From Anaeramoeba ignava BMAN (Eukaryota; Protista; Anaeramoebae), in the NCBI GenBank assembly GCA_028826165.1, contig JAPDFW010000091.1:221538-285537 (forward strand): a stretch of DNA of 64,000 nucleotides, given 5' to 3'. This document shows positions 16,937 to 64,000 of this stretch, one piece after another (positions within the stretch are counted from its first letter, which is position 1; each line of letters opens with the position of its first letter). Position numbers and translations under genes: made by a program. Below the pieces are notes generated by a model that saw only the letters and a program-made list of their open reading frames with translations, had not been told where the DNA came from and searched no databases.

Positions 16937-17401
16937 TTGTTTCTCTCCTTTCAAAATCAAAATAATAATAATAATAATAATAATTATAATTATAATAATT
17001 ATCTCAATATTTTCAATACAAATTAATTAAGATTCAATTGATTGAAAAATTTGTTGTTTTTGTTCTCTTCTTTTTTTTTTGCTTTTTTTTCTTTTTCTTT
17101 TTCTTTTAATTCAATTCAAAAAAATAAAAACAAAATTTAAAAAAAGATCATTTGAATAATCAGTGTTTTATTTCTTATTTCTTTTTTATTTCTTTCTTAT
17201 TTATTTATTTTTAATTAATTCAAAATAAAAAAAAAAATTTTTTTTTAAATTAAAAAAAATTAAAAAAATTAAAAAAAATTAAAAATAAATCAAAATTACT
17301 TTTTCTTTTCTTCTTTTCTTCTTTTTATTAATTCAAAAATTAATTCAAAAATCAATTTATTTTTTTTTCTTAATAAAAAAATTGAAAAATTAAATTGAAA
17401 A

Positions 17402-19468
17402 ATGGGTCAAACAGAATCAACAAATAAACTAAACAGAGTTAAAGGTTATATTCCAGAAAAATATCCAAGATTAATTGAAGAAAAAGATGGGAAAGTATCT
17501 TATTCAATCAAATACGAAGAAAATGGAGAAACAATGTATCGATCTCACATGGCAAAAGATGGATTAATTGGGAATTGGAACAATTCAGTTCAAACTTTAT
17601 ATGAAAATTTAGAAGCAACAACAAAAACTTTCCCAGATCATCAACTATTTGGAACAAGAAAATATGATAAAAAAACACAAAAATATACTGATTATGAATG
17701 GAAAACTTTCAAGGAATTCAATGAGGAAAGAACTTATTTTGGAAGTGGATTAATCAATTATAAATTGAAGAAAGATGACAGAATTGGAGTTTTTGCTAAA
17801 AATAGATATGAATGGGTTCTTGCTGAACATGCTGCTTATGCTTATTCTTTTCTTTTAGTTCCTTTATATCACACATTCGGTATTCCAAATACTCGCTATA
17901 TCATCAATGATTCAGAAATCAAAACAATTATTACTGAAGCTAAATATCTTCCGAAACTCAGTCAAATTTCCAAAGACTGTCCAACATTGGAATCAATTAT
18001 TCTTCTGAATGATCCTGAAAATGAACTGGAAGAAATTATGAAAGATAATAAAGATATTGAATCCTTAAAATCAGACAATATCAAGATTTTTCTTTTTGAT
18101 GAAATTCTCGAATCGGGAAAGAAAAAACAGCATACGCATCAACCAAGCAAACCAGATGATCTTTGCTCATTGATTTACACAAGCGGAACAACTTCCCAAC
18201 CCAAAGGTGTTTGCTACACACACAAAAACATGGTTGGAACTATCACAGGCTTTTATTACATGGGATACCCATTTTCAGACAACGAATCATATTACAGTTA
18301 TCTTCCTTTGAGTCATGTATTCGAACGTTCTTTGATCAACTCAATGATTGCGCTTGGCTCTCGTGTTGGTTTTTTCAGTGGAGATAATACACGATTATTG
18401 GATGAACTTCAACTTGTTAAACCAACCATTTTCATTGGAGTTCCAAGAATATTTGCCAAAGTTTATGATAGTATCAAAGCAGGAATCAAGAAAAAAGGAA
18501 TCTTTGCACAATATCTTTTCAACGTTGCATATGAAGCAAAGAAAAAAGCGATTGAGAATGGAGAATCATATGAATTATGGGATAAATTGGTTTTCAACAA
18601 AACAAAACAACTTCTTGGAGGAAAAATTGGAATACTCATTTCGGGAAGTGCTGCTCTATTGCCTTTGCACCAGGAATTCTTCAAGGTCATTATCGACCCG
18701 CATTTTGTTCAAGGCTGGGGACTAACAGAAACAGGGTCTGGAGGAACTGTTCAAATTTATGAAGATACTCGAAACATCGGATTGGTTGGTCCGCCTCTTT
18801 GTTGCAATGATATCAAGCTAGTGAGTGTTCCTGAACTCAATTACTCAGTCAATGATTTCCCCAATCCAAGAGGTGAACTCGCAGTAAAAGGCCCAAATGT
18901 TTTCGAAGGTTATTACAATAAAAAAGAAGCAACAGATGAAGTTATGATTGATGGTTGGTTTCATACTGGTGATATCGCAGAAGCTCTTCCAAACGGCTAT
19001 TTCAAGATCGTCGACAGAAAAAAAAACATCTTCAAACTTTCTCAAGGCGAATATATTGCGCCTGATGTTCTTGAAGGCATTTATTCAAATTCTTCCTTTG
19101 TTATGCAAATTATGGTTTATGGAAATTCAAGTGAAAATTATTTGATTGGAGTTGTTGTTCCTGAAAAAGCTATTTTATTGAGCCATTTTAATGATGAAAG
19201 AAAAGAAAATGAAGATGATGATTCTTTTTTCTCCAGAATTTGTCAAGATCCTAAATTGAAAAAGTTGATTCTGGATGATATGGAAAGGCTTGGAAGAAGA
19301 GAAAACAGATTTGGATTTGAAATTGTTAGAAATTTTATTGTTGAACCAAATCCTTTTTCAGTTGAAAATGAAATGATGACAACAACAATGAAATTGAGAA
19401 GAAAAGCTATTGAGCAAAATTACAAAAAGCAACTTCAAGATTTATATTCACAAGGATTCGAAAATTAA
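17402..19468 (+). CDS. ACSL: Long-chain fatty acyl-CoA synthetase (ACSL/LACS), copy 1
   Basis: IYTSGTTSQPKG AMP-binding motif, YLPLSH, GWGLTET, GWFHTGD, DRKKNIFKLSQGEYIAP. Confidence 0.95.
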   Translation: MGQTESTNKLNRVKGYIPEKYPRLIEEKDGKVSYSIKYEENGETMYRSHMAKDGLIGNWNNSVQTLYENLEATTKTFPDHQLFGTRKYDKKTQKYTDYEWKTFKEFNEERTYFGSGLINYKLKKDDRIGVFAKNRYEWVLAEHAAYAYSFLLVPLYHTFGIPNTRYIINDSEIKTIITEAKYLPKLSQISKDCPTLESIILLNDPENELEEIMKDNKDIESLKSDNIKIFLFDEILESGKKKQHTHQPSKPDDLCSLIYTSGTTSQPKGVCYTHKNMVGTITGFYYMGYPFSDNESYYSYLPLSHVFERSLINSMIALGSRVGFFSGDNTRLLDELQLVKPTIFIGVPRIFAKVYDSIKAGIKKKGIFAQYLFNVAYEAKKKAIENGESYELWDKLVFNKTKQLLGGKIGILISGSAALLPLHQEFFKVIIDPHFVQGWGLTETGSGGTVQIYEDTRNIGLVGPPLCCNDIKLVSVPELNYSVNDFPNPRGELAVKGPNVFEGYYNKKEATDEVMIDGWFHTGDIAEALPNGYFKIVDRKKNIFKLSQGEYIAPDVLEGIYSNSSFVMQIMVYGNSSENYLIGVVVPEKAILLSHFNDERKENEDDDSFFSRICQDPKLKKLILDDMERLGRRENRFGFEIVRNFIVEPNPFSVENEMMTTTMKLRRKAIEQNYKKQLQDLYSQGFEN

Positions 19469-20058: not shown

Positions 20059-20164
20059 ATTTTTCTTTTTTATTAATGTAAAAAAGAAAAAAGAAAAGAA
20101 AAAAATAAATTTTTTTCAGATTATTTTCAAATCATTTTCTTTTCTTTTCTTTTAAAAAATAATT

Positions 20165-21031
20165 ATGGAATCAAAATCAGAACCAAAAATATCAATTTTA
20201 ACTTTTAATATTTTAGCACCTTGTTATAAAGAAATTCAAGAAGGAAGAAGAACAGAAAGTGAATTCCCAGAAATTTGGGAAGAAAGAATGAATAAAGTGA
20301 TTAAATTTGCAACAGAATCAAAACCAGATATAATTTGTCTTCAAGAAGTTTGGTTTGAAGAAAAATGTTTATCAATTATTGAAAAAAACAGTAAAAAATA
20401 CAAGATGCTTAAATTACAAAGAATACAAAACAAAATGGATGGAATTGCAATTTTAGTGAATTCAGAAACTTTAGTAATCAAGAAATCATGGGAATTGGAA
20501 TTTGTTGGTGCAGGAAATAGAGTTGCTCTTGGTTGCCTTGTTTCCTTAAAAGAAAATGAAAAAATCCAATTTATTGTTGTTACAACTCATTTAGCTTTTC
20601 CTCATGATGAGAATTATTCCAAATTGAGACTTGAACAAATCAAAAAAACAATTAATTGGATGGAAAAACTTGATTCAAAAGAAATTCCATTGATTTTAAC
20701 TGGAGATTTTAATGGATTTGAAGATAATGTTTTTGAATATGTTTTTTCACAAAATTTTCTTTGTTCTTTTAAAGAAGTTAATAATAGATTTCAAACTGTT
20801 ACTCATTTTAATCATTTATCTCAAGAATTACCTGTTGATTTTATATTTTATCGAAATTATTCAGAATTAAAAGAAAAAGAATCAAAAGAAAATCAAAAAA
20901 TTAAATTAATCCCAATTAAATCTAATGTTCTTCCAGAAAATATTAATGATGATAAATTTCCAACTCAAAAAGATTATCAACTTTCAGATCATCGACCAAT
21001 TAAATCATTTTTTAAATTTGATTTTTTTTAA
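20165..21031 (+). CDS. Endonuclease/exonuclease/phosphatase (CCR4/Angel/nocturnin-like) protein, copy 1
   Basis: TFNILAP, DIICLQEV, TTHL, ILTGDFN, VDFIFY and SDHRPI EEP motifs. Confidence 0.9.
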   Translation: MESKSEPKISILTFNILAPCYKEIQEGRRTESEFPEIWEERMNKVIKFATESKPDIICLQEVWFEEKCLSIIEKNSKKYKMLKLQRIQNKMDGIAILVNSETLVIKKSWELEFVGAGNRVALGCLVSLKENEKIQFIVVTTHLAFPHDENYSKLRLEQIKKTINWMEKLDSKEIPLILTGDFNGFEDNVFEYVFSQNFLCSFKEVNNRFQTVTHFNHLSQELPVDFIFYRNYSELKEKESKENQKIKLIPIKSNVLPENINDDKFPTQKDYQLSDHRPIKSFFKFDFF

Positions 21032-25953: not shown

Positions 25954-26910
25954 ATGGAATCAAAACCAGAACCAAAAATATCAATTTTAACTTTTAATAT
26001 TTTAGCACCTTGTTATAAAGAAATTCAAGAAGGAAGAAGAACAGAAAGTGAATTCCCAAAAATTTGGAAAGAAAGAATGAATAAAGTGATTAAATTTGCA
26101 ACAGAATCAAAACCAGATATAATTTGTCTTCAAGAAGTTTGGTTTGAAGAAAAATGTTTATCAATTATTGAAAAAAACAGTAAAAAATACAAGATGCTTA
26201 AATTCAAAAGAACATATAAAAAACAAGATGGAATTATGATTTTAGTGAATTCGGAAACTTTAGTAATCAAGAAATCATGGGAATTACCGTTCAATGATGC
26301 AGGAAATAGAGTTGCTCTTGGTTGCCTTGTTTCCTTAAAAGAAAATGAAAAAATCCAATTTATTGTTGTTACAACTCATTTAACTTTTCCTCATCATGAA
26401 TTCGATGTTAAAATGAGACTTGAACAAATCAAAAAAACAATTAATTGGATGGAAAAACTTGATTCAAAAGAAATTCCATTGATTTTAACTGGAGATTTTA
26501 ATGGATTTGAAGATAATGTTTTTGAATATGTTTTTTCACAAAATTTTCTTTGTTCTTTTAAAGAAGTTAATAATAGATTTCAAATTGTTACTCATTTTAA
26601 TCATTTATCTCAAGAATTACCTGTTGATTTTATATTTTATCGAAATTATTCAGAATTAAAAGAAAAAGAATTAAAAGAAAATGAATTAAAAGAAAATGAA
26701 TTAAAAGAAAAAGAATTAAAAGAAAATGAATTAAAAGAAAATGAATCAAAAGAAAAAGAATCAAAAGAAAATCAAAAAATTAAATTAATTCCAATTAAAT
26801 CTAATGTTCTTCCAGAAAATATTAATGATAATAAATTTCCAACTCAAAAAGATTATCAACTTTCAGATCATCGACCAATTAAATCATTTTTTAAATTTGA
26901 TTTTTTTTAA
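25954..26910 (+). CDS. EEP-family (CCR4/Angel-like) protein, copy 2, with an (LKENE)n insertion
   Basis: Near-identical to 20165-21031 with the same catalytic motifs. Confidence 0.9.
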   Translation: MESKPEPKISILTFNILAPCYKEIQEGRRTESEFPKIWKERMNKVIKFATESKPDIICLQEVWFEEKCLSIIEKNSKKYKMLKFKRTYKKQDGIMILVNSETLVIKKSWELPFNDAGNRVALGCLVSLKENEKIQFIVVTTHLTFPHHEFDVKMRLEQIKKTINWMEKLDSKEIPLILTGDFNGFEDNVFEYVFSQNFLCSFKEVNNRFQIVTHFNHLSQELPVDFIFYRNYSELKEKELKENELKENELKEKELKENELKENESKEKESKENQKIKLIPIKSNVLPENINDNKFPTQKDYQLSDHRPIKSFFKFDFF

Positions 26911-36868: not shown

Positions 36869-37046
36869 AATCTAAATTGGAAAAAACTTTTTTGTTTTTT
36901 TGTTTTTTTTCCAAAATTAAATTAAAGCAAAAAAATTAAATAAAAGCAAAAAACTTTTTCTCATTTTATTTTCTTTCCAAAATTAAATAAAGCAAAAAAA
37001 TTTTTGTTTCATTTTTTTTTTCATTTTTTTTTTGACAAAATTCTTA

Positions 37047-39104
37047 ATGAATAAAAAAGATAAATTTAAAAGAGTTAAAGGTGGAATCCCACAAAAATAT
37101 CCAAGACTAGTTGAAGAAAAAGATGGGAGACCATCTTATGCATTCAAATACGAAGAAAATGGAGAAACAATTTATCGATCTCAAATGTCAAAAGATGAAT
37201 TAATTGGGATTTGGAACAATTCCATTCATACTTTATATGAAAATTTAGAAGAAACAACAAAAACTTTCCCAAATCATCAACTATTTGGAACAAGAAAATA
37301 TGATAAAAAAACACAAAAATATACTGATTATGAATGGAAAACTTACAAGGAATTCAATGAGGAAAGAACTTATTTTGGAAGTGGATTAATCAATTATAAA
37401 TTGAAGAAAGATGACAGAATTGGAGTTTTTGCTAAAAATAGATATGAATGGGTTCTTGCTGAACATGCTGCTTATGCTTATTCTTTTCTTTTAGTTCCTT
37501 TATATCACACATTTGGTATTCCAAATATTCGTTATATCATCAATGATTCAGAAATCAAAACAATTATTACTGAAGTTAAATTTCTTCCGAAACTCAGTCA
37601 AATTTCCAAAGACTGTCCAACATTGGAATCAATTATTCTTCTAAGCGATAATGAAAAGGAATTGGAAGAAATTATGAAAGATAATAAAGATATTGAATCC
37701 TTAAAATCAGACAATATCAAGATTTTTCTTTTTGATGAAATTTTCGAATCGGGAAAGAAAAAACAGCATACGCATCAACCAAGCAAACCAGATGATCTTT
37801 GCTCATTGATTTACACAAGCGGAACAACTTCCCAACCCAAAGGTGTTTGCTACACACACAAAAACATGGTTGGAGTTATTGCTGGATGCTATTACATTGG
37901 ATATCCATTTTCAGACAAGGAATCATATTACAGTTATCTTCCTTTGAGCCATATTTTTGATCGTGCAGTGATTAACGTGATGATTGCTTTTGGCTCTCGT
38001 GTTGGTTTTTTCAGTGGAGATAATACACGATTATTGGATGAACTTCAACTTGTTAAACCAACCATTTTCATTGGAGTTCCAAGAATATTTGCCAAAGTGA
38101 CTGATAGTATCAAAGCAGGAATCAAGAAAAAAGGAATTTTCACACAATATCTTTTCAACGTTGCATATGAAGCAAAGAAAAAAGCGATTGAGAATGGAGA
38201 ATCATATGAATTATGGGATAAATTGGTTTTCAACAAAACAAAACAACTTCTTGGAGGAAAAATTGCAATCATTATTTCGGGAAGTGCTCCATTACTTCCG
38301 ATCCATCAAGAATTCTTCAAGGTTTGCGTGACTCCGCATATTTATCAAGGCTGGGCAATGACAGAAACAGGATCAATAGGGACAGTCCAAATTTATGAAG
38401 AAACTCGATTGAATGGTGTTGTTGGACCGCCAATGTGCAGCAATGAAATCAAACTCGAAAGTGTTCCTGAACTCAATTACTCAGTCAATGATTTCCCTAA
38501 TCCAAGAGGTGAATTGTTAGTCCGAGGAATCAATATCTTCTCTAGTTATCACAATAAAAAAGAAGCAACAGATGAAGTTATTGTTGATGGTTGGTTCCAT
38601 AGTGGCGACATCGTAGAAGCTCTTCCAAACGGTGATTTCAGAGTTGTAGACAGAAAAAAAAACATCTTCAAACTTTCTCAAGGCGAATATATTGCGCCTG
38701 ATGTTCTTGAAGGCATTTATTCAACTTCTGAGTTCATTTTCCAAATTCTTGTTTATGGAAATTCAAATGAAGATTATTTGATTGGAATTCTTGTTCCTGA
38801 AAAAGCTGTTGTGTTGAACCATTTTAATGATGAAAGAAAAGAAAATGAAGATGATGATTCTTTTTTCTCCAGAATTTGTCATGATCCTAAATTGAAAAAT
38901 TTGATTCTGGATGATATTTCTAAACTTGGAAGAAGAGAAAACAGATTTGGATTTGAAATTGTTAGAAATTTTATTGTTGAACCAAATCCTTTTTCAGTTG
39001 AAAATGAAATGTTAACAACAACAATGAAATTAAGAAGAAAAGTTATTGAGCAAAATTACAAAAAGCAACTTCAAGATTTATATTCACAAGGATTAAAAAA
39101 TTAA
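37047..39104 (+). CDS. ACSL: Long-chain fatty acyl-CoA synthetase, copy 2 (first ATG at 37047)
   Basis: Close paralogue of 17402-19468 with the same AMP-binding motifs. Confidence 0.95.
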   Translation: MNKKDKFKRVKGGIPQKYPRLVEEKDGRPSYAFKYEENGETIYRSQMSKDELIGIWNNSIHTLYENLEETTKTFPNHQLFGTRKYDKKTQKYTDYEWKTYKEFNEERTYFGSGLINYKLKKDDRIGVFAKNRYEWVLAEHAAYAYSFLLVPLYHTFGIPNIRYIINDSEIKTIITEVKFLPKLSQISKDCPTLESIILLSDNEKELEEIMKDNKDIESLKSDNIKIFLFDEIFESGKKKQHTHQPSKPDDLCSLIYTSGTTSQPKGVCYTHKNMVGVIAGCYYIGYPFSDKESYYSYLPLSHIFDRAVINVMIAFGSRVGFFSGDNTRLLDELQLVKPTIFIGVPRIFAKVTDSIKAGIKKKGIFTQYLFNVAYEAKKKAIENGESYELWDKLVFNKTKQLLGGKIAIIISGSAPLLPIHQEFFKVCVTPHIYQGWAMTETGSIGTVQIYEETRLNGVVGPPMCSNEIKLESVPELNYSVNDFPNPRGELLVRGINIFSSYHNKKEATDEVIVDGWFHSGDIVEALPNGDFRVVDRKKNIFKLSQGEYIAPDVLEGIYSTSEFIFQILVYGNSNEDYLIGILVPEKAVVLNHFNDERKENEDDDSFFSRICHDPKLKNLILDDISKLGRRENRFGFEIVRNFIVEPNPFSVENEMLTTTMKLRRKVIEQNYKKQLQDLYSQGLKN

Positions 39105-50012: not shown

Positions 50013-53000
50013 ATGACAACAACAGAAGATATACAAGCAATACCAATAAGCACAGAAGCATTATCAAGATACATTGAATCAGTTGCAAATGCACTATTAA
50101 CATCACCTAATGATTCAACCACTAAAACAGGAAAAATAGAAAAATTAATATTTGACATGGAATCACGAGCAAAAATTGAAAAATTCGCAACAGATCCACA
50201 AATGAATGTGTTATGCATTCGACAAGTAACAACAGCACAAGATCAATTTGATTTCCATCTTGAATTAGAAGTCAGTTACACAAACGAAAACTCATCAAGC
50301 ATTGCTTTTATCAAAAGAACAGGATTGATCAAAGAAGATGCTTCTTTATCTTCACAGATTCATGTTGTGAATATTGGCGAAGGCTCTCCTTTTGAAATTA
50401 TTCATAGTTTGATTCATAATACTGTTTCTCCCTTTTTTACTTCTTTTGAATCGAAAACTCGTGAAAGAAGTGTTTCTCCTTTCCAGGATAATGTAAACTT
50501 GGCTAAAACTCAAATTATTCAAGATGCTCCGTTAGTGAAAAAGAAATTATCTGAATTAGAACTTACTCTTGTTCAATGCCAACAGAATGTTGAAGTTCCT
50601 GAAATTATTTTGACAGTTGAACCTGAAATTCGTGATTTTGTTTTGAAGGTATATATAAAAATATTTTAATTATTTTAATTATTTTAATTATTTTAAATTA
50701 TTTTAATTATTTTAATTATTTTAAATATTTTAATTATTTTAATTATTTTAAATTATTTTAAATTATTTTTAATTATTTTAAATTATTTTAAATTATTTTA
50801 ATTATTTTAATTATTTTAATTATTTTAATTATTTTAATTTTTATTTTAAATTATTTTAATTATTTTAAATTATTTTAAATATTTTAATTATTTTAAATTA
50901 TTTTAAATATTTTTATTATTTTAATTATTTTAATTATTTTAAATTATTTTAATTATTTTAAATTATTTTTATTATTTTAATTATTTTAAATTATTTTAAA
51001 TTATTTTTATAGGCAAAACAAAAAGGAATCCAAATCACTAATGAAGACCTATCTAACACTTTTGATGAATACGAATTCTTAAAAAGAGTTCAAAATGGTG
51101 TTAATAAATGGATTACAGACATACAAAAAGTAACAAGAATGAAAAGAGATGTTTCAAGTGGAAATGCACTACAAGAAATCAACTTTTGGATTTCACTCGA
51201 AAACTCATTAAAAAACGTTGAAAAACAAGTCAAAACACCAGAGGTTCAACACACACTCAATCTTCTTAAAATCAAAAAAAGACATCTCGCAAGTTTTGCA
51301 TTTGAATCTGATACAGGACTCAAACAATGCCTTAACAAAGTGGAAAATTACAACATTTTAATGAAGGAAATGCCACTAAATCAATTACAATCAGCTCAAG
51401 ACATCGATTCTCTTCGTGATGCCGTTTTGAATATTTTTTTCCATTTGAAAAAAATAAGAAATACTGATTATCCTCTTCAAAGATCAGTTGAATTTGTATT
51501 CGCCATTTTTAATGATCTTTCTTTGCAAATTGTTTCAATTCTGAAGTCAAAAGATATGCTGAATTTGCCTTTTTATGAATTCGACACCATTTCAGGAAAA
51601 TGTATTGATTTATTTCAAACATGGGATGAAAATTACAGTCATTTTAAAGATGCATTACGAGAAATTGCAAGAAGAAAAGGAGAAGAAAAATCTTTTAGAG
51701 TAAGCAAAAAAAAAACAAAAATAACGGAAAAAAACAAAATAACAGAAAAAACAAAAATATTCTGCTTGATTTTAGACACCAAATCAATCACAACCATTAA
51801 AACAAAGAATCATGCAGATCATTAAATTCAGAAGACAACACGAAGAACTGCAAAATGTGATCACCAAAATCCTTCCAAAAACAACAACAGAATTATCAGA
51901 AATCAACGCAATAGAAGAAGTTAAAGAAGCTTATGAATATGTACGAAATATCGACCCATTATTACTTACAGACGAAGGGAACGAAATGTGGAACGAGGCA
52001 ATCAAGAATTACGATACAAAAATAGACTCAATTGAAGGACACATCACAGCAAGTCTGCGAGAAAGACTTGGAAACGCTAAAAATGCAAATGAAATGTTCA
52101 AGGTGTTTAGTCAGTTCAACGTTCTGTTTTTCCGACCGAGAATCCGAGGAGCAATCCAAGAATATCAGACGCAATTAATCCATGGAGTCAAAGAAGATAT
52201 CCAAGAATTGCAAGAAAAATTGCAGCATAAATATCAACAATCAGAAACAAGCCGAATTAGTGAAATTCGTGATATTCCTTCCGTTTCAGGAGAAATCATC
52301 TGGGTTAAACAAATTAGAAACCAATTGGAAACTTATATGAATAGAATCGAAGCTGTTCTCGGCGTCGGTTGGGAAAATTACAGCGAAGGTCAAAAACTCA
52401 AAGCAGATGGAGAAAGCTTCAAGAAGGAACTCAACCCGCAGAAAATATTCGACACTTGGGTTCGTGATGTGGAAAGCAAGAAATGGGAAATCTCAGGTCC
52501 GATTTTCGCAATCCAACAAGGAAAAAAGAAAATGCATTTAAAAGTTACTTTTGGAAATGAAATCATCACACTTTTCAAAGAAGTCCGTAATCTCCAATGG
52601 CTTGGATTCCGTGTTCCCTTCTCAATCACACATATTGCGGATAATGCAGGTCAAGTTTATCCGTTTGCTGTTTCTTTGATTGAATCTATTAAAAATTATT
52701 TCCAAATCTGTCGAAGCATCGATTCTGAAATTTATCCTTTGATCGCATCACATCGCTCGCAAATTCAAGACAAAATCAAACTGGGTATTTCCTTGAGCTG
52801 GGATTCCCACAAGCTGGAAGCATATGCAACCGAGCTCGCAAATTCAATACTGTTTTTCCAAGAACAAGTTGATGGGCTTGTGAGTCGATACAGCGAAATC
52901 AAAAAATCACTTGATCAATTAAAAACCTGCGAATTCAAATTCGAGGCATTACAAGAAGTTATCCAACAAATCCAGAAAGGCATCGACGAACTGAGCTTGG

Positions 53001-56000
53001 GATCTTTTTCCAATTTAAACACTTGGGTCAATTTTCTTGATTCCAAAATTGAGCAGATTTTCATCCAAAGATTAAACGATTGCATAACAACATGGAACGA
53101 GAATTTTGATGATTTCCTAACAACAATTGAAGAGCAAAAACATCCGAAAAAATTCAAAAAAAGCTTTCATGACGAAGACGACGAACAAGAAGATCAAGAA
53201 GAGAAAAAGCTTACTCTGGAGCTCCCAACAATGACATACAGAATCAAAATCAAGAACCGCGTTGTTTATTTAGATCCACCATTTAAAGATGCACGAGAAA
53301 ATTGGATTGTTCAATTACATCAAACAATGGGGATCATCTGCAATCAAGAACGCATCAAAAGTACGCGATTCGATGTCTTCAGCACATCACAAATTTCAAT
53401 AGACGAGAAAACATACTCGCGACTCGTTGCCAAACTTCCCGAAGGATTATTATTTACAGCATATAACAAAATTGAGCTACTTTTGGATCAAATTGAGGAA
53501 TACATCAAAATTTGGTTCCAATATCAAGCATTATGGGACATGGATGTTCAGAGAGTCACACAAGAAATTGGCGACGATCTCGAGAACTGGCAAAAACTTC
53601 TTTCCGAAATCAAGCGCCACAGATCACCTTTTGATACGCGAGAAACCACTAAAAAACTCGGACCGACTCTGATTGACTATTCTCAAGTCCAAGCAAAAGT
53701 AAGCAACAAATATGACTCTTTCCACAAAGATTTCCTCAACAAATTCGGTGAGAAATTGGGTGTCTCAATGCAAAGTTTCCATGAAACAATTGAAAAAGCT
53801 CAAGAAGAACTTGAAAAACATTCTTTCGATCCAAATTCAACAGCAGACATCGTCTCCTTTGTTACCCAACTTACACAAATGAAACGGAATATGGAGGATT
53901 GGACTCGCACCGTTGATCTCCTTCATTCTAGTGAAAATACCCTTACTCGCCAACGATTCCAATTCCCAGAAGCTTGGCTTTCTTTCGAAAGGGTAAACGA
54001 CAAATGGAGTTCTTTTAACGAAATTTTCACACAAACAAACAGCAAAGTGAATGAGGAAATCCCTCTTTTGCAAAACAAAATTATCCACCAAGAAGAATTT
54101 TTCGAAACACAACTTAATGAATTTAATTTTGATTGGAAAAAAGAAAAGCCTGTTGATGGAAGAATAAAACCTAATGTCGCCATCGCTAAACTTGAGAACT
54201 TCGGTAAAAGACTCGAGAAACTTGAAGAGCAGAACGAAAAGATATCAAGTGCGAAAGAAGCTCTTGATATGGAACGATCTCACCTCCATAATTTGATCCC
54301 AATTCGTGAAGAAGTTGTTGCCTTGAAACAAGTTTGGAATGAGCTGTCTTCTGTTTGGGACAAATTAGAGGAAATCAAAGAGACTCCATGGTCAGCAGTT
54401 GTTCCCAAAAAATTAAGAGCATCTCTTGATGATTTGATTACTCAACTCAGAACCTTACCACCAAGTGTCAGGGAATACAATGCTTATGAACATTTCCATT
54501 CAATGATAAAAGGATTTTTGAAATGCAATGTGACTATTATTGATTTGAAATCAGAATCACTTAAAGAAAGACATTGGAAACAAATACAAAATAAATTGGG
54601 AGTTAAATGGGTTTTTTCTGAATTAACACTTGCTGATATCTACAATGTGGATTTAATCAAAAACGAAGCTATTTTTAAAGAAGTTATCAGAATTGCCCAA
54701 GGTGAAATGGCTCTAGAAAAATTTCTTGAACAAATGAAAGATCATTGGCAAAACTACATCCTTGATCTCGTGAATTACCAGAATAAATGTAAACTGATTA
54801 AAGGATGGGATGATTTATTTACCAAAATTTCTGATTATCTCAATTCACTTGTCGCAATGAAAAACTCTCCATTTTATAAAGTATTTGAAGAAGAAGCAAT
54901 TGCGTGGGAAGATAAATTAAACAGATTACATTTACTTTTTGATACATGGATTGATGTTCAAAGAAAATGGGTTTATTTAGAAGGAGTATTTTGTGGAAGT
55001 AGTGATATCCAACAATTATTACCTCAAGAATCATCCAAATTCAAAACTATTGATAATGATTTCCTCATCATGATGAAAAAAGTCGCCAAATCACCTCATA
55101 TTCTTGATGTTCTCAATATTCAAGGTCTTCAACACACATTGGAAAGATTATCTGATATGCTTTCCAAAGTTCAAAAGGCTCTTGGTGAATATCTAGAAAA
55201 ACAAAGATCAGCTTTCCCAAGATTTTATTTTGTTGGAGATGAAGATCTTTTGGAAATTATTGGACACAGCAAAGATGTAGTTAAAATACAAAGACATTTA
55301 AGGAAAATGTTTGCAGGAATTGCTTTACTTAAATTAAGTGATGATGAAACATCAATTATTGGGATGTTATCAAGAGAACATGAAGAAATTAACTTTCCAG
55401 ATCCTGTTAAATATAAAGAAATTTCCAAAATTCATGAATGGCTGAATATGGTTGAAAATCAAATGAGAGTTTCTTTGGGAAATTGTTTGGATATTTCATT
55501 AAGAGAATTTATTCAATTATCTTCAAAAGATGAACTTGATAAGGATCTCTTTTTAAAATGGGTTGAAACAACACCTGCTCAAATTATAGTTCTTACTATT
55601 AAAGTAATTTGGACACAAAAAGTTGAAAATGCACTTTCAAATAATAGTCAAGTTTTCCTTAAACAAACACTTGATTGGATTGGAAATATTTTAGATTTAT
55701 TAGCTTTTAATGTTCTTTTTGATTTACAACCAATTACAAGAAAGAAATATGAACATTTAATTATTGAATTAATTCATCAAAGAGATGTTATTAGAAGATT
55801 GATTCAAGCTGGTGTAAAAACCCTAAAAGATTTTGCATGGACTGAAGAAATGAGATTTTATTGGAATGAAAAGGAAAGTCATGAAACGAAATTAATGATT
55901 TCAATTGCAAATGCATCATTTGCATATGGATTTGAATATTTAGGAGTTGTTGATAAATTAGTACAAACACCACTTACAGATCGATGTTATCTTACATTAA

Positions 56001-59000
56001 CACAAGCATTAAATTTAAGATTAGGTAAATAAAATATAAAAATATTTAAATAAATTTAAAATATAAATTAATATAAATATTTTTTAATAAATAAAAAGGT
56101 GGTGCTCCTGCTGGTCCTGCTGGAACTGGTAAATCTTTAAGAAATTCAACTATAGTTTATACTCCAAATGGTCCTAAATTAAATGGTGATTTACAAATTG
56201 GTGATGAAGTTTGTACTCCTGATGGAAAATTTGCTAAAATTCTTGCTGTTTATCCTCAAGGTAAAATTGGTGTTTTTAGAGTTCATTTCAAAGATGGTGG
56301 TTTTGTTGATTGTTCTGATGATCATCTTTGGTCTGTTGATCATTCATCTAAAATTATAACAACTCAAGAAATGAGAAGATGTTTAAGAAGAGAAGAAAAA
56401 ATTTCAATAGAAACTCCTAAATATACAAATTTCAAAACTCAAAAAACCAAAATATCTCCTTATCTTTTTGGAGTTTTAATTGCAGGAAATGAAAAGATAT
56501 TAGAAAACCAAAATATCAAAATTTCCAATTCAATTAACAAACAAATTTTCCAAAATATTCAACATTTATTAAATCTTACATCTGATGGAAATTATGAAAT
56601 TTATTATGATCAAATTAATGATTATATGCCAAAACTTTCACAAAATAAATTTATTCCAAATGAATTCCAATTTAATTCCAAAGAAATAAGATTCCAATTA
56701 CTTCAAGGAATTCTTGATAGAAATGGATATTTTGATTCCAAAACAAATTCACCAATTTATTCAACATCATCTCAACAATTAGCATTTGATTTAAAGAAAT
56801 TAATTGAATCACTTGGAGGAATTTGTTACATTTCCAGAACAAAACAAAACGAGGAAATTATATTTAATTGTCGAATTGAAATTGAAAAACCAGAAAAACT
56901 TTTCACATTAAATGATAAAATTTTAATTGCTAAAAAATCTAAAAAATTTATTAATGAAAGATTTGTTTCCAAAATTGAATATATTTGCAAAGATGAATGT
57001 CAATGCATATTAATTGATCATCCAGATCATTTATTTATCACAGAAAATCATATTGTAACACATAATACAGAAACTGTTAAAGAACTTGGAAATCAATTAG
57101 GAAGATTTGTTTTGGTTTTTAATTGTGATGAAAATTTTGATTTCCAAGCAATGGGAAGAATTTTTGTTGGTCTTTGTCAATGTGGAGCTTGGGGATGTTT
57201 TGATGAATTTAATAGATTAGAAGAAAGAATGTTATCAGCAGTTTCTCAACAAATTCAAACAATTCAATTATCTTTAAAAGAACAATTAAAAGAAGTTGAA
57301 TTAATAGGAAGAAATGTTAAAATTAATCCAAATATGGGAATTTTTATTACAATGTAAAAAATATATAAAATTTAAAACACAAAAATTTATTTATTTAAAA
57401 TAAAAAATTTTTTTTTAATTTAGGAATCCTGGTTATACTGGAAGAGTTCAATTACCAGAAAATTTAAAAACATTATTTAGAACAATTTCTGTTGTTAAAC
57501 CTGATAGAGAATTAATTGCTCAAGTTATGCTTTTTTCTCAAGGTAAAAACAAAAATAAAAATATAAAAAATAAAAATATAAAATTTTAATTAATTTTAAT
57601 TAATTTTAATTTTTTAAAATAGGATTTAAAACAGCTGAAAAATTATCAGGAAAAGTTGTCCCTTTATTTAATTTATGTGCAGACCAACTTTCACCACAAA
57701 AACATTATGATTTTGGATTAAGAGCTTTAAAAAGTGTATTAGTTTCAGCAGGAAATATAAAAAGATTAGAAATTAAAGATAAAAAACAAGATGAAGTCAA
57801 AGATAAAAAACAACTTGGAGAAGAAGAAAAATCTGTAGTTATTAAAAGTATATGTGAAACAGTTATTCCAAAATTAGTTGCAGATGATATTCCATTACTA
57901 CACAGTTTATTATCAGATGTATTCCCAGGAGCACTTCCAATAGAATTAGAAATGGCAGAATTAAGAAATGTTATTTATGATATTTGCAAGAAACATTATT
58001 TAGTTCCAGGAAACAGATGGATAGAAAAAATGCTTCAATTATTTCAATTACAAAAAATTCATCATGGAGTTATGATGGTTGGTCCATCAGGAAGTGGAAA
58101 ATCAACAGCATGGAAAATTCTTTTGGAAGCACTTGAAAGAGTTGAAGGAATTAAATCACAATCATATGTTATTGATCCTAAAGCTATTACTAAAGAAGAA
58201 CTTTTCGGAGTTCTTGATCCAACAACAAGAGAATGGACTGATGGAATATTCACACATATTTTAAGGAAAATTGTTGATAATGTAAGAGGAGAATCAAATA
58301 TGAGACACTGGATTATTTTTGATGGAGATGTTGATTCTATTTGGGTTGAGAATTTAAATTCAGTTCTTGATGATAATAAAATACTTACTTTGCCTAATGG
58401 TGAAAGAGTTGCTTTGACTCCTAATGTCAGAGTAATGTTTGAAGTTCAAGACTTAAGATATGCAACACCAGCAACAGTTTCAAGATGTGGAATGGTTTGG
58501 TTCTCTGATGATACCATTTCATTAGATATGAATTTTGCTCATTATCTTGAAAAAACTAAACATGTTCCTTTATTAGAAAGTGAAAAAACTGGATTTGAAG
58601 AGCAACTTTCAGATGAAAAAGAAAAAAATCAAGAGTTATTAAGAACTCAAGAAATTTGTGTTGATGCTTTAAAAAAATATTTCGATTCAAATGGTGTTGT
58701 TATTAAAGCAATTGATTATGCTTTTAAAAAACAAAATGTAATGGATTTCACAAATCTTCGTTCATTAACATCAGCATTCTCACTTTTGGATCAAGGAATA
58801 AACCATATTCACGAATATAATTCAACTCATTCTGGTTTCCCAATGGGAAAAGAACATATCCAAAAATATGTTACAAAAAGATTACTTTTCTCATTGATTT
58901 GGGGATTTGGAGGATCAATGTCTTTACAAGATCGAGAAGAATTTGGAACATTTTTATTAAATATTTGTGATATTCAAGGACCTGAAGATAAAATGCATCC

Positions 59001-62000
59001 ATTAATTGATTTTGAAGTTCAAATTGAAGATGGAGAATGGGCTCTATGGAAAAATCGAGTTCCAAATCTTGAAATTGAAACATATATGGTTGCTAGTTCA
59101 GATGTTGTTATCCCAACTGTGGATACTTTAAGACATGAAGAAGTTGTTAATTCTTGGCTTAAAGACCATCTTCCTTTAATACTTTGTGGACCACCTGGAT
59201 CTGGTAAATCACTTAGAAATTCAGCAACAGTTTATACTCCAAATGGACCTAAAATTAATGGAAAATTAAAAATTGGAGATGTAGTTTGCACTCCTGATGG
59301 AAAAACTTCTAAAATTATTGGTATTTATCCACAAGGTAAACTTCATGTTTATCGAGTTAAATTTGAAGATGGAGATTTTGTTGATTGTTCTGCTGATCAT
59401 CTTTGGACTGTTAATGATCATTCAAATTATAAAAAACAAAAATTTGTTCTTACAACTCAACAAATTATTGATAATCTTCAAATTATCCCAACTATTCCTG
59501 AAAGAAAAGGAGCTAGATTTAGTATTGATACTCCAAAACCAATTTTATTTATGGAAAGAAATGTTCCTTTTGATCCTTATTTACTTGGAGTTTTAATTGG
59601 AAAAGAAGAAATTTATATTGGAAATGAAAATATTGAAAAACAAAATCATTATAAAGAAATACTTGAAGAATTGGGACTTTTAAATCAACCAAAAGATAAA
59701 TTATTTATTCCTCAAGATTACATTTTCAATTCTAAAGAAATTAGATTGGAAATTATTAAAGGATTATTAGATTCAAATTCATCCATTAATTATAAAGATA
59801 ACTCAATTATATTCAAATGTAAATCAACAAAATTATCACAAGATTTTAAAAAAGTTATTCAATCATTGGGAGGAATGTGTTCAATTGAAACAAATTCAAA
59901 TAAAACAAATTTATGCAAAATTTTCTATAAAACACCAAAAGAATTATTCAAATTATCCAAAAATAAAGATAAAATTGGAGAACCAAGTCCATTTGTATTT
60001 GAAAGAAGAATAATTTCTATTGAATGTGTTGGAGAAGATGAATGTACATGTATCACAATTGATCATCCAGAAGAATTATATTTAACAGATAATTTTGTTG
60101 TAACACATAACACAATGACTTTATATTCAACACTTCGATCATTACCAAATTTCGAAGTTGTAGGAATTAACTTTTCAAGTGCAACAACACCTGAATTAGT
60201 TATGAAAACATTAACACATTATTGCAAATATCAAAAAACACCAAATGGAGTTATTCTTGAGCCAACAAAATTAGATAAATGGCTTGTTATTTTCTGTGAT
60301 GAAATTAATCTTCCCAAACAAGATCGATATGGAACACAAAAAGTAATAACATTTTTAAGACAATTAGTTGAAAGAGGAGGATTTTGGAGAATATCCGATT
60401 ATCAATGGGTAACAACAAGAAGAATTCAATTTGTAGGAGCATGTAATCCACCAACAATGGTTGGTCGAGTTCCTTTATCACATCGATTCCTTAGACATTC
60501 ACCTGTAATTCTTGTTGATTATCCTTCTGCAGATTCACTCAAACAAATTTATGGAACTTTTAATAGAGCAGTTCTTAGATTGTGTCCTACTCTTCGTTCA
60601 AATGCAAGATCATTAACAGATGCAATGGTTGAATTTTATTCACTTTCTCAACAAAGATTCACACAAGATATGCAACCTCATTATGTTTATTCACCAAGAG
60701 AATTGAGTAGATGGACTCGTTCTCTCAGAGAAATTTTAAAACCTTTAGGTGGAGATCTTGATTTAGATGGACTTGTTAGAATATTTGTTCATGAAGGATT
60801 AAGATTGTTTCAAGATAGATTAGTTTATAAAGAAGAAAGAGATTGGACTGATGAACAATTAGATTCAGTTTCTAAGAAATATTTCCCAGGAATCCGAGAG
60901 AAAACTCTTGAAAGACCCATTTTATTTAGTGATTGGTTATCTAAGGATTATATGGATGTTGATAGAGAGAAATTAAGAGAACATGTTAAAGCCAGATTAA
61001 AAGTATTTTATGAAGAAGAATTGAATGTTAAATTAGTATTATTTAATGAAGCACTTGATCATATTTTAAGAATTGATCGAGTATTAAAGCAACCACAAGG
61101 TAAATTTCAAAATAGTTTCAAAATAATTTCAATTTAAGTTTTATTTTAAAATTTTAATTTTTATTTAAATTTTATTTAAATTTTATTTTAATTTTATTTA
61201 AATTTTATTTAATTTTATTTAAATTTTATTTTAATTTAAATTAAATTTTATTTTAAATTTATTTTAATTTTATTTTAATTTTATTTAATTTTATTTTTAA
61301 TTTTATTTTTAATTTTATTTTAAATTTTATTTTTAAATTTTATTTAAATTTTATTTTTAAATTTTATTTTTAAATTTTATTTAAATTTTATTTAAATTTT
61401 ATTTAAATTTTATTTTAATTTTATTTAAATTAATTTTATTTTATTTTTAATTTTAAATTTTAATTTTAAATTTTATTTAAATTTTATTTTAATTTTATTT
61501 TAATTTTATTTAAATTTTATTAAAATTTAAATTTTATTTAAATTTTAATTTTATTTTATTTTAAATTTTATTTAAATTTTATTTAAATTTTATTTAAATT
61601 TTATTTTAATTTTATTTTAATTTTATTTTAATTTTATTTAAATTTTAAATTTTATTATTTTAATTTTAGGTCATTGTTTGCTAATTGGATCAAGTGGTGC
61701 TGGTAAATGCTTAGATCCAAATACTCCTGTTATGCTTTATAATGGAAAATCAAAATTGGCTAAAAATATTAAAGTTAATGATCAACTTATGGGTGATGAT
61801 TCAAATCCAAGAAATGTTTTAAGTATTTGTAAAGGAAGAGAAAATATGTATCGAATAAAACAATCAAATGGTGATGAATATATTGTTAATGAACCTCATA
61901 TTCTTTCTTTGAAATTAACAATCAATTCAATTCTTAATCATGAAAAAGATCTTAAAAGATATTCAGTTCTTTATTTTGAAAATCATTGTGAGAAAATTAA

Positions 62001-64000
62001 ATATTTCAACTACGGTAAAAAGAAAATTATCTGAATCTAAATCTTTTTACTTCAAGTTTAAATGCTCTTCATTTTCGCAAAACAAATTTATAAATCAAAT
62101 TTTGGAAAGTAAAAATATAATCATAAAGGAGATGTTATTGATATTGCTGTTATTGATTATATTAAGAAACCTCAAATTTGGAAAAAAAATATCATGTTGG
62201 ATTTAAAGTTCCAATTCAATTCAATTCAAATCCAAATATTCCAATAGATCCTTATAATTTGGGGAATTTATCTTGGAATGGAAAACAATAAATCAGATGA
62301 AGAAATTAAAATTCCTCAATGTTATAAAATTAATGATCGTGAAACAAGATTAAATATTTTGGCAGGATTAATTGATTCAAATGATGAAATAATTTATGAT
62401 GAAATGAATAATTGTTATAATATTCCAATTAATGAAAATCAAGAAGAATTATATAAAGATATCAATTCATTTCACGTTCACTTGGATTTTTTCTTGTGAA
62501 AAAGAAAAGAAAAATTATAATATCAGGAAATGAAATTGAAGAAATTCCTGTTAGAAATCCAAATAAGAAAATTAAAAATCAAAATAAAACACAAAATTCA
62601 AATTTAGAAAGTGAAATTGAAGTTGAATTAATTGGAGAAGGAGATTATTGTGGATTTGAAATTGATGGGAATAGAAGATTTTTACTTGGAGATTTCACAG
62701 TTACACATAATACAGTTTTATCAAGATTTGTTGCTTGGATCAATGGATTATCAGTTTTCCAAATCAAAATTAGTAGAAAATACACATTATTTGATTTTGA
62801 TGAAGATCTTAGAGTTGTTATGAAAAGAGCGGGAATTAAAGGAGAAAAAATATGTTTCATTTTTGATGAAAGTAATATTCTTGAAACATCATTTTTGGAA
62901 AGAATGAATGCATTATTGGCAAGTGGAGAAGTACCAGGTTTATTTGAAGGAGATGAAATGGGAGCTTTAATGAATCAATGCAGAGAAGCAGCTCAATCTG
63001 ATGGAGCAATTCTTGATACAAATGATGAATTATTTAATTGGTTTACAAAACAAGTTCAAAACAATTTACATATTGTTTTCACAATGAATCCAGCAACAGG
63101 AGATTTTTCAAATCGAGCAGCAACTTCACCAGCTTTGTTTAACAGATGTGTACTTGATTGGTTTGGAGATTGGTCACCATCAGCAATGTATCAAGTTGGA
63201 TATGAATTCACAAAAGATCTTAATTTGGAAAATCCAAACTATTTCCCACCAATTAGCTTCCCACATGAATTTGATGCAAAAGATAATTTCCCAGATTCAC
63301 CTAATCATAGAGAATCAATTGTTAGTTCTTTTGTTACAATCCATAAAAGTGTTGAAAAATCATCAAAGAAATTGCAAAAAACTCAAGGAAGAAGTAATTA
63401 TGTTACACCAAGACATTATTTGGATTTCATTACACATTATCTGAATCTTTTCAATGAAAAAAGAAGTTCTCTTGAAGAACAACAACATCATTTGGATGTT
63501 GGATTGAAAAAGATGAAAGAAAAGAAACTGAAGAAGTTGCGAAATTACAACTTAAATTGAAACAAAAAGAAAAAGAACTTGAATCCAAAAATGAAGAAGC
63601 AGAAGCCAAATTGAAACAAATGGTTAAAGATCAACAAGAAGCAGAAGCAAAGAGAAAGGCCTCACTTGAAATCCAAACAAAATTGGAAGAGCAAAACAAG
63701 GAAATTGCAGCACAACAAAAAATTGCAATGGATGATCTTTCAAAAGCAGAACCTGCAGTTTTAGCAGCAAAGAAAAGTGTTAACAGTATCAAGAAAAGTC
63801 ATTTAGAAGAATTAAAATCCATGTCAAATCCACCTGAATTAGTTAAAATGACTCTTCAAGCAGTTTCACAATTTTTGGGAAGTAAAGAGACTTCATGGGG
63901 AGAAATTCGAAGATTATTAAAAAGAAAAGATGATTTTTTATTCAAGTGTTAATTTTGATACCAATTCAATGACATCTAAAAGTGATTTCAAGGCAATTCC
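50013..64000 (+). CDS. DYNC1H1: Cytoplasmic dynein 1 heavy chain (partial, continues past the window). Exons 50013-50648, 51013-51699, 51776-56024, 56099-57353, 57424-57542, 57623-61099, 61670->64000; contains three inteins
   Basis: Cytoplasmic-dynein tail motifs ([37 protein letters not shown]), linker [20 protein letters not shown]1 GPAGTGK/T...[11 protein letters not shown]2 [11 protein letters not shown]3 GPPGSGK/T, AAA4 GSSGAGK/T, and the start of the stalk coil. All six GT-AG joins keep the frame. Apparent frameshifts after about 62020. Confidence 0.97.
56134..57066 (+). mobile_element. Intein 1 (311 aa) in dynein AAA1 Walker A; Ser1, class 3 WCT signature, degenerate LAGLIDADG endonuclease
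   Basis: GPAGTGK|[13 protein letters not shown]...DCSDDHLW...LQGILDRNG...ECQCILID...IVTHN|TETVK. Removal restores GPAGTGKTETVK. 933 nt, open frame. Confidence 0.96.
59209..60111 (+). mobile_element. Intein 2 (301 aa) in dynein AAA3 Walker A; Ser1, class 3 WCT signature, degenerate LAGLIDADG
   Basis: GPPGSGK|[13 protein letters not shown]...DCSADHLW...IKGLLDSNS...ECTCITID...VVTHN|TMTL. Removal restores GPPGSGKTMTL. 903 nt, open frame. Confidence 0.96.
61708..62711 (+). mobile_element. Intein 3 (about 335 aa) in dynein AAA4 Walker A; Cys1 class 1, LAGLIDADG remnant, several apparent frameshifts
   Basis: GSSGAGK|[13 protein letters not shown]...[11 protein letters not shown]...VNEPHIL...LAGLIDSND...[22 protein letters not shown]|TVLSRF. 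Removal restores GAGKTVLSRF. 1004 nt, not a multiple of 3 as assembled. Confidence 0.93.

Follow-up and report, generated by a model that had tools for sequence, protein, structure and literature searches.

The gene at the end of the window (the whole stretch of 64,000 nucleotides that was analysed) encodes a cytoplasmic dynein-1 heavy chain. It is one of two such genes in Anaeramoeba ignava and, on the evidence of their sites and sequences, three inteins have homed into its Walker A codons. The second dynein-1 gene, paralog B, on contig C35 within 450071-467700, carries the same three inteins. We consider the whole account very probable, i.e., a parasitised dynein-1 with three inteins, three splicings, decayed endonucleases, conversion between paralogs, and assembly errors. 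The features of the gene in the window, paralog A, are as follows:

50013..64000, + strand, gene for cytoplasmic dynein-1 heavy chain, paralog A, with 7 exons; extends past the contig end onto the overlapping contig C113
50649..51012, + strand, intron 1, GT-AG; missing from the transcriptome ORF P0016
51700..51775, + strand, intron 2, GT-AG; removed by splicing in the NCBI model, with the same match pattern in P0016
56025..56098, + strand, intron 3, GT-AG; lies 35 nt before the AAA1 intein; missing from P0016
56113..56133, + strand, AAA1 Walker A up to Lys (GPAGTGK)
56134..57066, + strand, intein I1 (AAA1), 933 nt, 311 aa; Ser1 to THN, +1 Thr at 57067; degenerate LAGLIDADG
57354..57423, + strand, intron 4, GT-AG; missing from P0016
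57543..57622, + strand, intron 5, GT-AG; missing from P0016
58081..58104, + strand, AAA2 Walker A (GPSGSGKS); no intein, Ser at the +1 position, Walker B without Glu
59188..59208, + strand, AAA3 Walker A up to Lys (GPPGSGK)
59209..60111, + strand, intein I2 (AAA3), 903 nt, 301 aa; Ser1 to THN, +1 Thr at 60112; degenerate LAGLIDADG
61100..61669, + strand, intron 6, GT-AG; 570 nt and rich in AT; lies 38 nt before the AAA4 intein
61687..61707, + strand, AAA4 Walker A up to Lys (GSSGAGK)
61708..62711, + strand, intein I3 (AAA4); Cys1 to THN, +1 Thr at 62712; VMA/giant-virus type, degenerate endonuclease
63500..64000, + strand, further indels in the dynein frame (63528, 63919-63946); missing from both other assembly copies

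The original prediction of a cytoplasmic dynein heavy chain is borne out by Pfam domain order (DHC_N1/N2 tail-linker followed by AAA_6/5/7/8, with AAA1-4 in order), by matches in the PDB, and by the public record. The best PDB matches of the C113 model are cytoplasmic dyneins at 3119-3154 bits, as against at most 1090 bits for axonemal dyneins, and paralog A is closest to dynein-1, not to axonemal dynein or dynein-2. When exons were compared singly with the public NCBI models, KAJ5071176.1 matched those of paralog A at 99.7-100%, splice-edge overhangs excepted. Six GT-AG introns were counted in paralog A, in line with the six or more RNA introns claimed earlier. The Walker B Glu is present in AAA1, AAA3 and AAA4 and absent from AAA2, the site that had correctly been described as empty. 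The earlier link of inteins to hydrolytic P-loops is not supported, since the DNAH10-like dynein of A. ignava has an intein in AAA2; a rule of inteins in hydrolytic sites only was thus rejected within the same genome.

The headline is not new, because a three-intein dynein of A. ignava BMAN, with homing into Walker A loops, was reported in 2023 (Gallot-Lavallee et al., 2023; PMC10710043). NCBI also annotates KAJ5071176.1 as ‘intein-containing dynein heavy chain precursor’, and the novelty of such a dynein, which the original prediction wanted checked against earlier work, is not supported. The published dynein shares species, assembly, gene family and the number of three inteins with paralog A. 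However, the main text of that report describes one paralog with three inteins, whereas here both dynein-1 paralogs have them, and it names neither the AAA sites nor the near-identity of the paralogs, which its supplement may do. A second three-intein paralog with near-identical inteins, not found in that main text, is an addition relative to it. The same report includes a class 3 intein cluster in Anaeramoeba, and the splicing that it describes as confirmed concerns three inteins only, none of them I1-I3 (PMC10710043). The public models of A. ignava dynein (KAJ5071176.1, KAJ5068892.1, KAJ5078911.1, KAJ5078912.1) are all fragmented and can now be corrected.

In AAA1, AAA3 and AAA4, the Lys and Thr of GxxGxGK|T directly flank the respective insert on either side. 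Each interrupts a conserved host motif, starts with Ser or Cys, ends with His-Asn and is in frame, I3 only in the C113 and C35 copies. The inserts between K and T, their S/C start, THN end, +1 Thr and LAGLIDADG remnants are as predicted, and the claim that intact P-loops require protein splicing is supported. The proposed check against Hint and intein profiles succeeded for I3, which matches Pfam PF05203 (Hom_end_hint) at 64.7 bits versus a cut-off of 32.1, but not for I1 and I2, which gave no Hint-domain match in Pfam or NCBIfam profiles. I2 matches solved inteins by sequence and by fold; its predicted fold (pLDDT 93.8) resembles PI-SceI-type inteins, it has 9,134 relatives at E<=1e-10, and it is 42% identical to I1. 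I3 matches PI-SceI/Prp8 inteins, and Hom_end was also matched. The profile match of I3 and the relatives and fold of I2 speak against a chance resemblance to inteins.

We give practically no credence to the reading of I1-I3 as spliceosomal introns or retained non-coding DNA. No supporting point for it was found, and I1 and I2 are in-frame and stop-free, with full intein motifs and no GT-AG ends. For I1 it is refuted by P0016, which keeps this insert though the neighbouring introns 3-5 are gone. Retention in mRNA, which had been put forward as a check, is thus seen for I1, while no transcripts were found across I2 or I3; none was seen across intron 6 either. P0016 itself is chimeric, with parts from both paralogs.

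I3 in the window contig is 1004 nt long, and its frame is broken by seven indels of 1-2 nt between 62016 and 62461 (net +2). These, the further indels downstream and the NCBI model of paralog A, which ends inside I3, could mean that the break in I3 has made paralog A a pseudogene and left only paralog B functional. However, this is very unlikely, as I3 is open in both other assembly copies (334 and 336 aa), and C113, a second version of this locus (98% over 9.2 kb), matches paralog B at 7/7 indels and has its own errors clustered at its own contig end. The tail of paralog A is also transcribed, with 0 differences in 1,300 aa. The assembled paralog B contains two frameshifts; across the three assembled copies the frameshifts lie at different places, and no region is interrupted in all three. 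Since the I3 indels of the window are missing from two other copies, we regard them as probable assembly errors at the contig end.

The original prediction implied a standard Ser1 mechanism for I1 and I2. This is not supported, as both contain the triplet of class 3 inteins, WCT, which consists of B12 Trp, F4 Cys and G5 Thr with a +1 Thr/Ser (PMC2807308). The residues are H64, W66, C291 and T309 in I1, and H64, W66, C281 and T299 in I2. The triplet is found in I1, I2 and 45/45 aligned relatives, of which only the Trp count is independent because Cys and THN were part of the pattern by which the relatives were chosen. Class 3 inteins are further characterized by a non-nucleophilic first residue, whereas I1 and I2 both have Ser1; among WCT inteins, 3/37 start with Ser or Cys (PMC2807308). 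By their motifs, I1 and I2 are WCT-type, class 3-like inteins, and the same motifs are what points to their splicing mechanism. Such Ser1-WCT inteins lend themselves to experiments on the nucleophile that begins splicing. I3 has Cys1, a block B His and no WCT triplet, and is by these residues a class 1 intein, the only one of the three. Its relatives at 30-45% include a Marseillevirus packaging ATPase, and it probably belongs to Anaeramoeba cluster 15.

All three endonucleases appear dead, and the inteins would now be passengers, because the acids at the LAGLIDADG catalytic positions have been replaced by Gly/Asn in I1, Lys/Asn in I2 and Met/Asn in I3. In the 45 aligned relatives, D or E stands at the first of these positions in 40/45, and the second is D in 42/45. 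Inteins of the I1/I2 family also occupy Walker A loops in A. ignava kinesins and helicases, and the family forms one clade (support 0.997) in a tree built with FastTree. A direct jump between AAA1 and AAA3 is a possible origin; I2 shares 45% identity with a helicase intein versus 42% with I1, and I1 and I2 are not sisters in the tree, with weak support. The nearest relatives of I1/I2 outside Anaeramoeba are in PhoH-like proteins and viral contigs; an alignment query found 558 relatives in viral contigs, in which a scan with a single sequence found nothing. When other long proteins with I1 or I3 were sought in small candidate sets, only A. ignava dyneins were returned. A genome-wide DNA target of CTGGTAAA|ACA was rejected, as 0/17 other sites carry it.

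Divergence between paralogs A and B is 0.18% in the inteins, 3.9% in the motor exteins and 33-45% (protein) in the tails, which are 55-67% identical in aa. This gradation is suggestive of gene conversion with the inteins at its centre. From the intein junctions outwards, divergence climbs from 0.6% within 100 nt to 2.0% at 101-200 nt and 4-5% at 201-1600 nt. The near-identity could alternatively be an artefact of assembly or polishing, as the Nanopore assembly was Pilon-polished, near-identical repeats allow short-read cross-mapping, and near-identity is also seen in the final ~900 nt of the gene, where no intein is found. We find this explanation possible, yet rather unlikely, since the three assembled copies are still 2-3 nt apart in I1 and I2, the divergence rises with distance from the junctions, and polishing merges only sequences that are already very similar. 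Under gene conversion, the observed pattern would be due to a process that keeps the inteins nearly identical across paralogs. The two paralogs would then naturally document conversion around inteins, in the nucleus of a eukaryote and with endonucleases that are apparently dead, and bear on how inteins outlast the decay of their endonucleases.

In the proposed pathway, removal of six introns would give a precursor of ~5,530 aa, a length obtained by arithmetic on positions; P0016 shows I1 and introns 3-5, and the rest is extrapolated. Each intein would then excise and join Lys to Thr, as the intact splicing motifs suggest, which should leave a ~4,590-aa heavy chain together with three free inteins (36, 34 and 39 kDa). 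In I1 and I2, the block F Cys would attack the upstream bond by the class 3 route, while I3 would follow the class 1 route from Cys1, both judged by motifs. Precise deletion alone restores a P-loop, and this is why the inteins persist.

The inserts resemble parasitic elements more than a control switch, and no evidence for regulation was found behind the earlier idea of post-translational transport control. It could still be argued that the inteins are domesticated switches, in which oxidation or metals block splicing by the block F Cys at AAA1 and AAA3 and thereby gate motor maturation. I1 and I2 have the class 3 motif, one class 3 DnaB intein has been reported to sense oxidative stress (PMC6195587; PDB 6bs8), and all three inteins are kept in both paralogs after endonuclease decay. 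However, the same genome has ~100 inteins in unrelated hosts (PMC10710043), the I1/I2 family is also in kinesins and helicases, and an axonemal-type dynein has its intein in AAA2. Moreover, only eight orthologous intein sites are common with A. flamelloides, with no dynein among those listed (PMC10710043). Domestication is thus improbable. The same low probability applies to a broader version, in which every dynein heavy-chain gene found (two dynein-1, one DNAH10-like) needs protein splicing and the AAA1/AAA3 inteins, kept identical by conversion, are domesticated as an oxygen/redox gate on motor maturation. Conditional splicing, if real, would add a new control of a cytoskeletal motor, but nothing here points there.

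Both the inteins and their host can be compared with known systems. Paralog A resembles the cytoplasmic dynein-1 heavy chains of Dictyostelium and human (DYNC1H1) in domain order and Walker A/B pattern, and its estimated mature length of 4,586 aa is similar to the human 4,646 aa. Unlike these, A. ignava has two paralogs, with divergent tails and homogenised motors, and three inteins. I1 and I2 have the same block B Trp, block F Cys and block G Thr as Anaeramoeba cluster 1 and the class 3 DnaB inteins of mycobacteriophage Bethlehem, M. smegmatis and M. chimaera (PMC2807308; PDB 6bs8, 6rix), and share the +1 Thr and P-loop insertion with all of these. They differ from the DnaB inteins in their Ser start, eukaryotic nuclear host and degenerate endonuclease. 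I3 is similar to the class 1 inteins of VMA1, PRP8 and giant viruses (PI-SceI type) in Cys1, block B His, terminal HN and Hom_end_hint plus Hom_end, and differs from them in its dynein AAA4 host and in the replacement of the endonuclease acids by Met and Asn.

Each of the three inserts in the window's dynein heavy chain gene (paralog A) lies where the original prediction had placed it, between the Lys and the Thr of a Walker A loop. The gene and its inserts are arranged as follows:

50013 to window end, + strand: dynein heavy chain gene, paralog A, six GT-AG introns
56134-57066, + strand: I1, 311 aa, in AAA1, between Walker A Lys and Thr
59209-60111, + strand: I2, 301 aa, in AAA3, between Walker A Lys and Thr
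61708-62711, + strand: I3, in AAA4, between Walker A Lys and Thr

The inserts start with Ser (I1 and I2) or Cys (I3), and all three end in THN before a +1 Thr, as had been described. AAA2 indeed has no insert, and the Walker B Glu is also absent there while present in AAA1, AAA3 and AAA4. The expected Hint-domain match was obtained for I3, which matches Pfam Hom_end_hint across its full length as well as the PI-SceI and Prp8 inteins, and whose relatives (30-45% identity) include giant-virus inteins. The Pfam Hint search gave no match for I1 or I2, though I2 matches solved inteins by sequence and its predicted structure (pLDDT 93.8) has a fold match to endonuclease-containing inteins. I1 and I2 are 42% identical.

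The exons were compared singly with public models. KAJ5071176.1, 'intein-containing dynein heavy chain precursor [Anaeramoeba ignava]', a member of the cluster of the protein found by the I2 search, matches the window exons at 99.7-100%, splice-edge overhangs apart, and its model ends inside I3. The model from contig C113 scores 3119-3154 bits against cytoplasmic dyneins vs at most 1090 against axonemal dyneins. In both paralogs an intron precedes the AAA1 insertion point by 35 nt (window 56025-56098) and another precedes the AAA4 insertion point by 38 nt (61100-61669); I1 and I3 thus coexist with introns close by. After I1 the window reads TETVKELG (57082-57084), a possible assembly substitution, where paralog B and the EukProt transcriptome ORF P0016 have TETVKALG. 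Elsewhere in the window are an actin gene (151-1284), a near-identical pair of EEP-like ORFs (20156-21028 and 25954-26907) and two similar ORFs of unknown kind (17399-19465 and 36987-39101).

The claim that the inserts stay in mRNA holds for I1, which is present in P0016 while the surrounding introns 3-5 are absent; no transcript spanning I2 or I3 was found in our searches. P0016 is a chimera that switches from paralog A to paralog B sequence after 1,300 residues, which indicates that both paralogs are transcribed.

In the window contig, I3 is 1004 nt long and seven indels of 1-2 nt break its frame. Two further copies exist in the assembly, on C113 and C35; in both, I3 is open (334 and 336 aa), and they are concordant at all seven indel positions. 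The final 9.2 kb of the window (54750-64000) and C113:175800-184995 overlap at 98% identity, and C113 carries the rest of the gene; the two contigs are probably one locus split over two contig ends with an unjoined overlap. The C35 copy belongs to paralog B, in a different gene neighbourhood. Since I3 is open and concordant in C113 and C35, indels in the window contig and in C113 each gather toward their own contig end, and the assembly is Nanopore-based, the I3 breaks are most likely contig-end errors.

Paralog B (C35:450071-467700; L051, L052) has the same three inteins. It contains two assembly frameshifts, one in the tail at about C35:465160 and one past the AAA3 intein at about C35:457090, and its NCBI models come in two pieces, KAJ5078912.1 and KAJ5078911.1. 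The paralogs share 55-67% protein identity in the tail and differ at 378 of 9,726 nt (3.9%) in the motor-region exteins and at 5 of 2,838 nt (0.18%) in the inteins. Divergence drops sharply near 54300-54500, from 20-40% of nucleotides upstream to 2-10% downstream, i.e., distinct tails appear to sit on a homogenised motor. Within 100 nt of an intein junction divergence is 0.6%; it rises to 2.0% at 101-200 nt and to 4-5% at 201-1,600 nt. The catalytic acid, kept by most relatives, is lost from both LAGLIDADG motifs in I1, I2 and I3, which makes it unlikely that their own endonucleases still drive homing today. Once their endonucleases are dead, inteins would be expected to diverge more quickly than a dynein motor, yet these are near-identical, which points to probable recent gene conversion in tracts centred on the inteins. 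Three caveats apply to this reading: the final ~900 nt of the gene, where no intein lies, are also near-identical; polishing that merged similar repeats could produce such near-identity; and paralog B carries the two frameshifts given above. If gene conversion did occur, the inactivating changes shared by A and B suggest that the copying either did not involve these endonucleases or came once they had decayed.

A restriction of inteins to hydrolytic P-loops, as the original prediction implied, is contradicted by the genome's other dynein, an axonemal type closest to DNAH10 (L062, C126:522369-525764). Its AAA2 Walker A contains a class 1 intein of 303 aa (GGTRSGK|C...THN|S), a relative of I3 with 44% identity over the first 68 aa; AAA2 is thus open to invasion. 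At the P-loop of AAA1 the match of this dynein is interrupted by 183 nt (C126:526115-526297), which may be an intron at the target site and is not long enough for a full-size intein. In kinesins and DEAH-type helicases of the genome, relatives of I1 and I2 come directly after GK; in a tree with 45 outside relatives, the eight Anaeramoeba sequences included group as a single clade. The occupied sites fit parasites that seek P-loops and do not look chosen for regulation. The motif CTGGTAAA|ACA is common to the three occupied sites (56125-57069, 59200-60114, 61699-62714) and absent at AAA2; the pattern was picked post hoc, with a chance of ~0.03 per site from codon usage. It is no general DNA target, since 17 further intein sites examined in the genome all lack it. 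Many further inteins (L044/L046 on C102 and C55, L047 on C106, L035, L036, L037, L050, L021) apparently reside in P-type ATPase, MCM, AAA, helicase, ABC, GTPase and SNF2 hosts by their flanking motifs, consistent with the published intein load. The 899-aa ENA metagenome protein P0199, with kinesin (PF00225) and intein domains, possibly comes from another eukaryote that has a motor-protein intein.

I1 and I2 carry the class 3-defining triplet (block B Trp, block F Cys, block G Thr) and have kept Ser1, as have 3 of 37 inteins with this triplet in PMC2807308. Class 3 inteins cannot do without the block F Cys but need no N-terminal nucleophile (PMC2807308), and from their residues I1 and I2 are predicted to follow the class 3 route. 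I3 is class 1. By arithmetic on public models, three excisions would reduce a precursor of ~5,532 aa to a chain of ~4,586 aa, close to human DYNC1H1 at 4,646 aa. Each ligation would restore one P-loop, and AAA1, the main ATPase of dynein (PMC2533788), would thus be inactive before splicing. The original prediction saw here a possible post-translational control of transport; no support was found for such regulation of the motor, which we regard as highly improbable. The inserts are likely three selfish self-splicing elements within a working dynein-1.

The gene is real and striking, and it is already described. PMC10710043 reports that one BMAN dynein paralog contains three inteins, that a cytoplasmic dynein 1 and an axonemal dynein 10 have both been invaded, that homing has targeted the Walker A loops of proteins unrelated to each other, and that its cluster 1 inteins appear to be class 3, so the three-intein dynein is not new. 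Homing between paralogs is described there in general, and the near-identity of A and B was not found in its main text. Our results add gene-model corrections, the exception at AAA2 and what is probably a trace of gene conversion.
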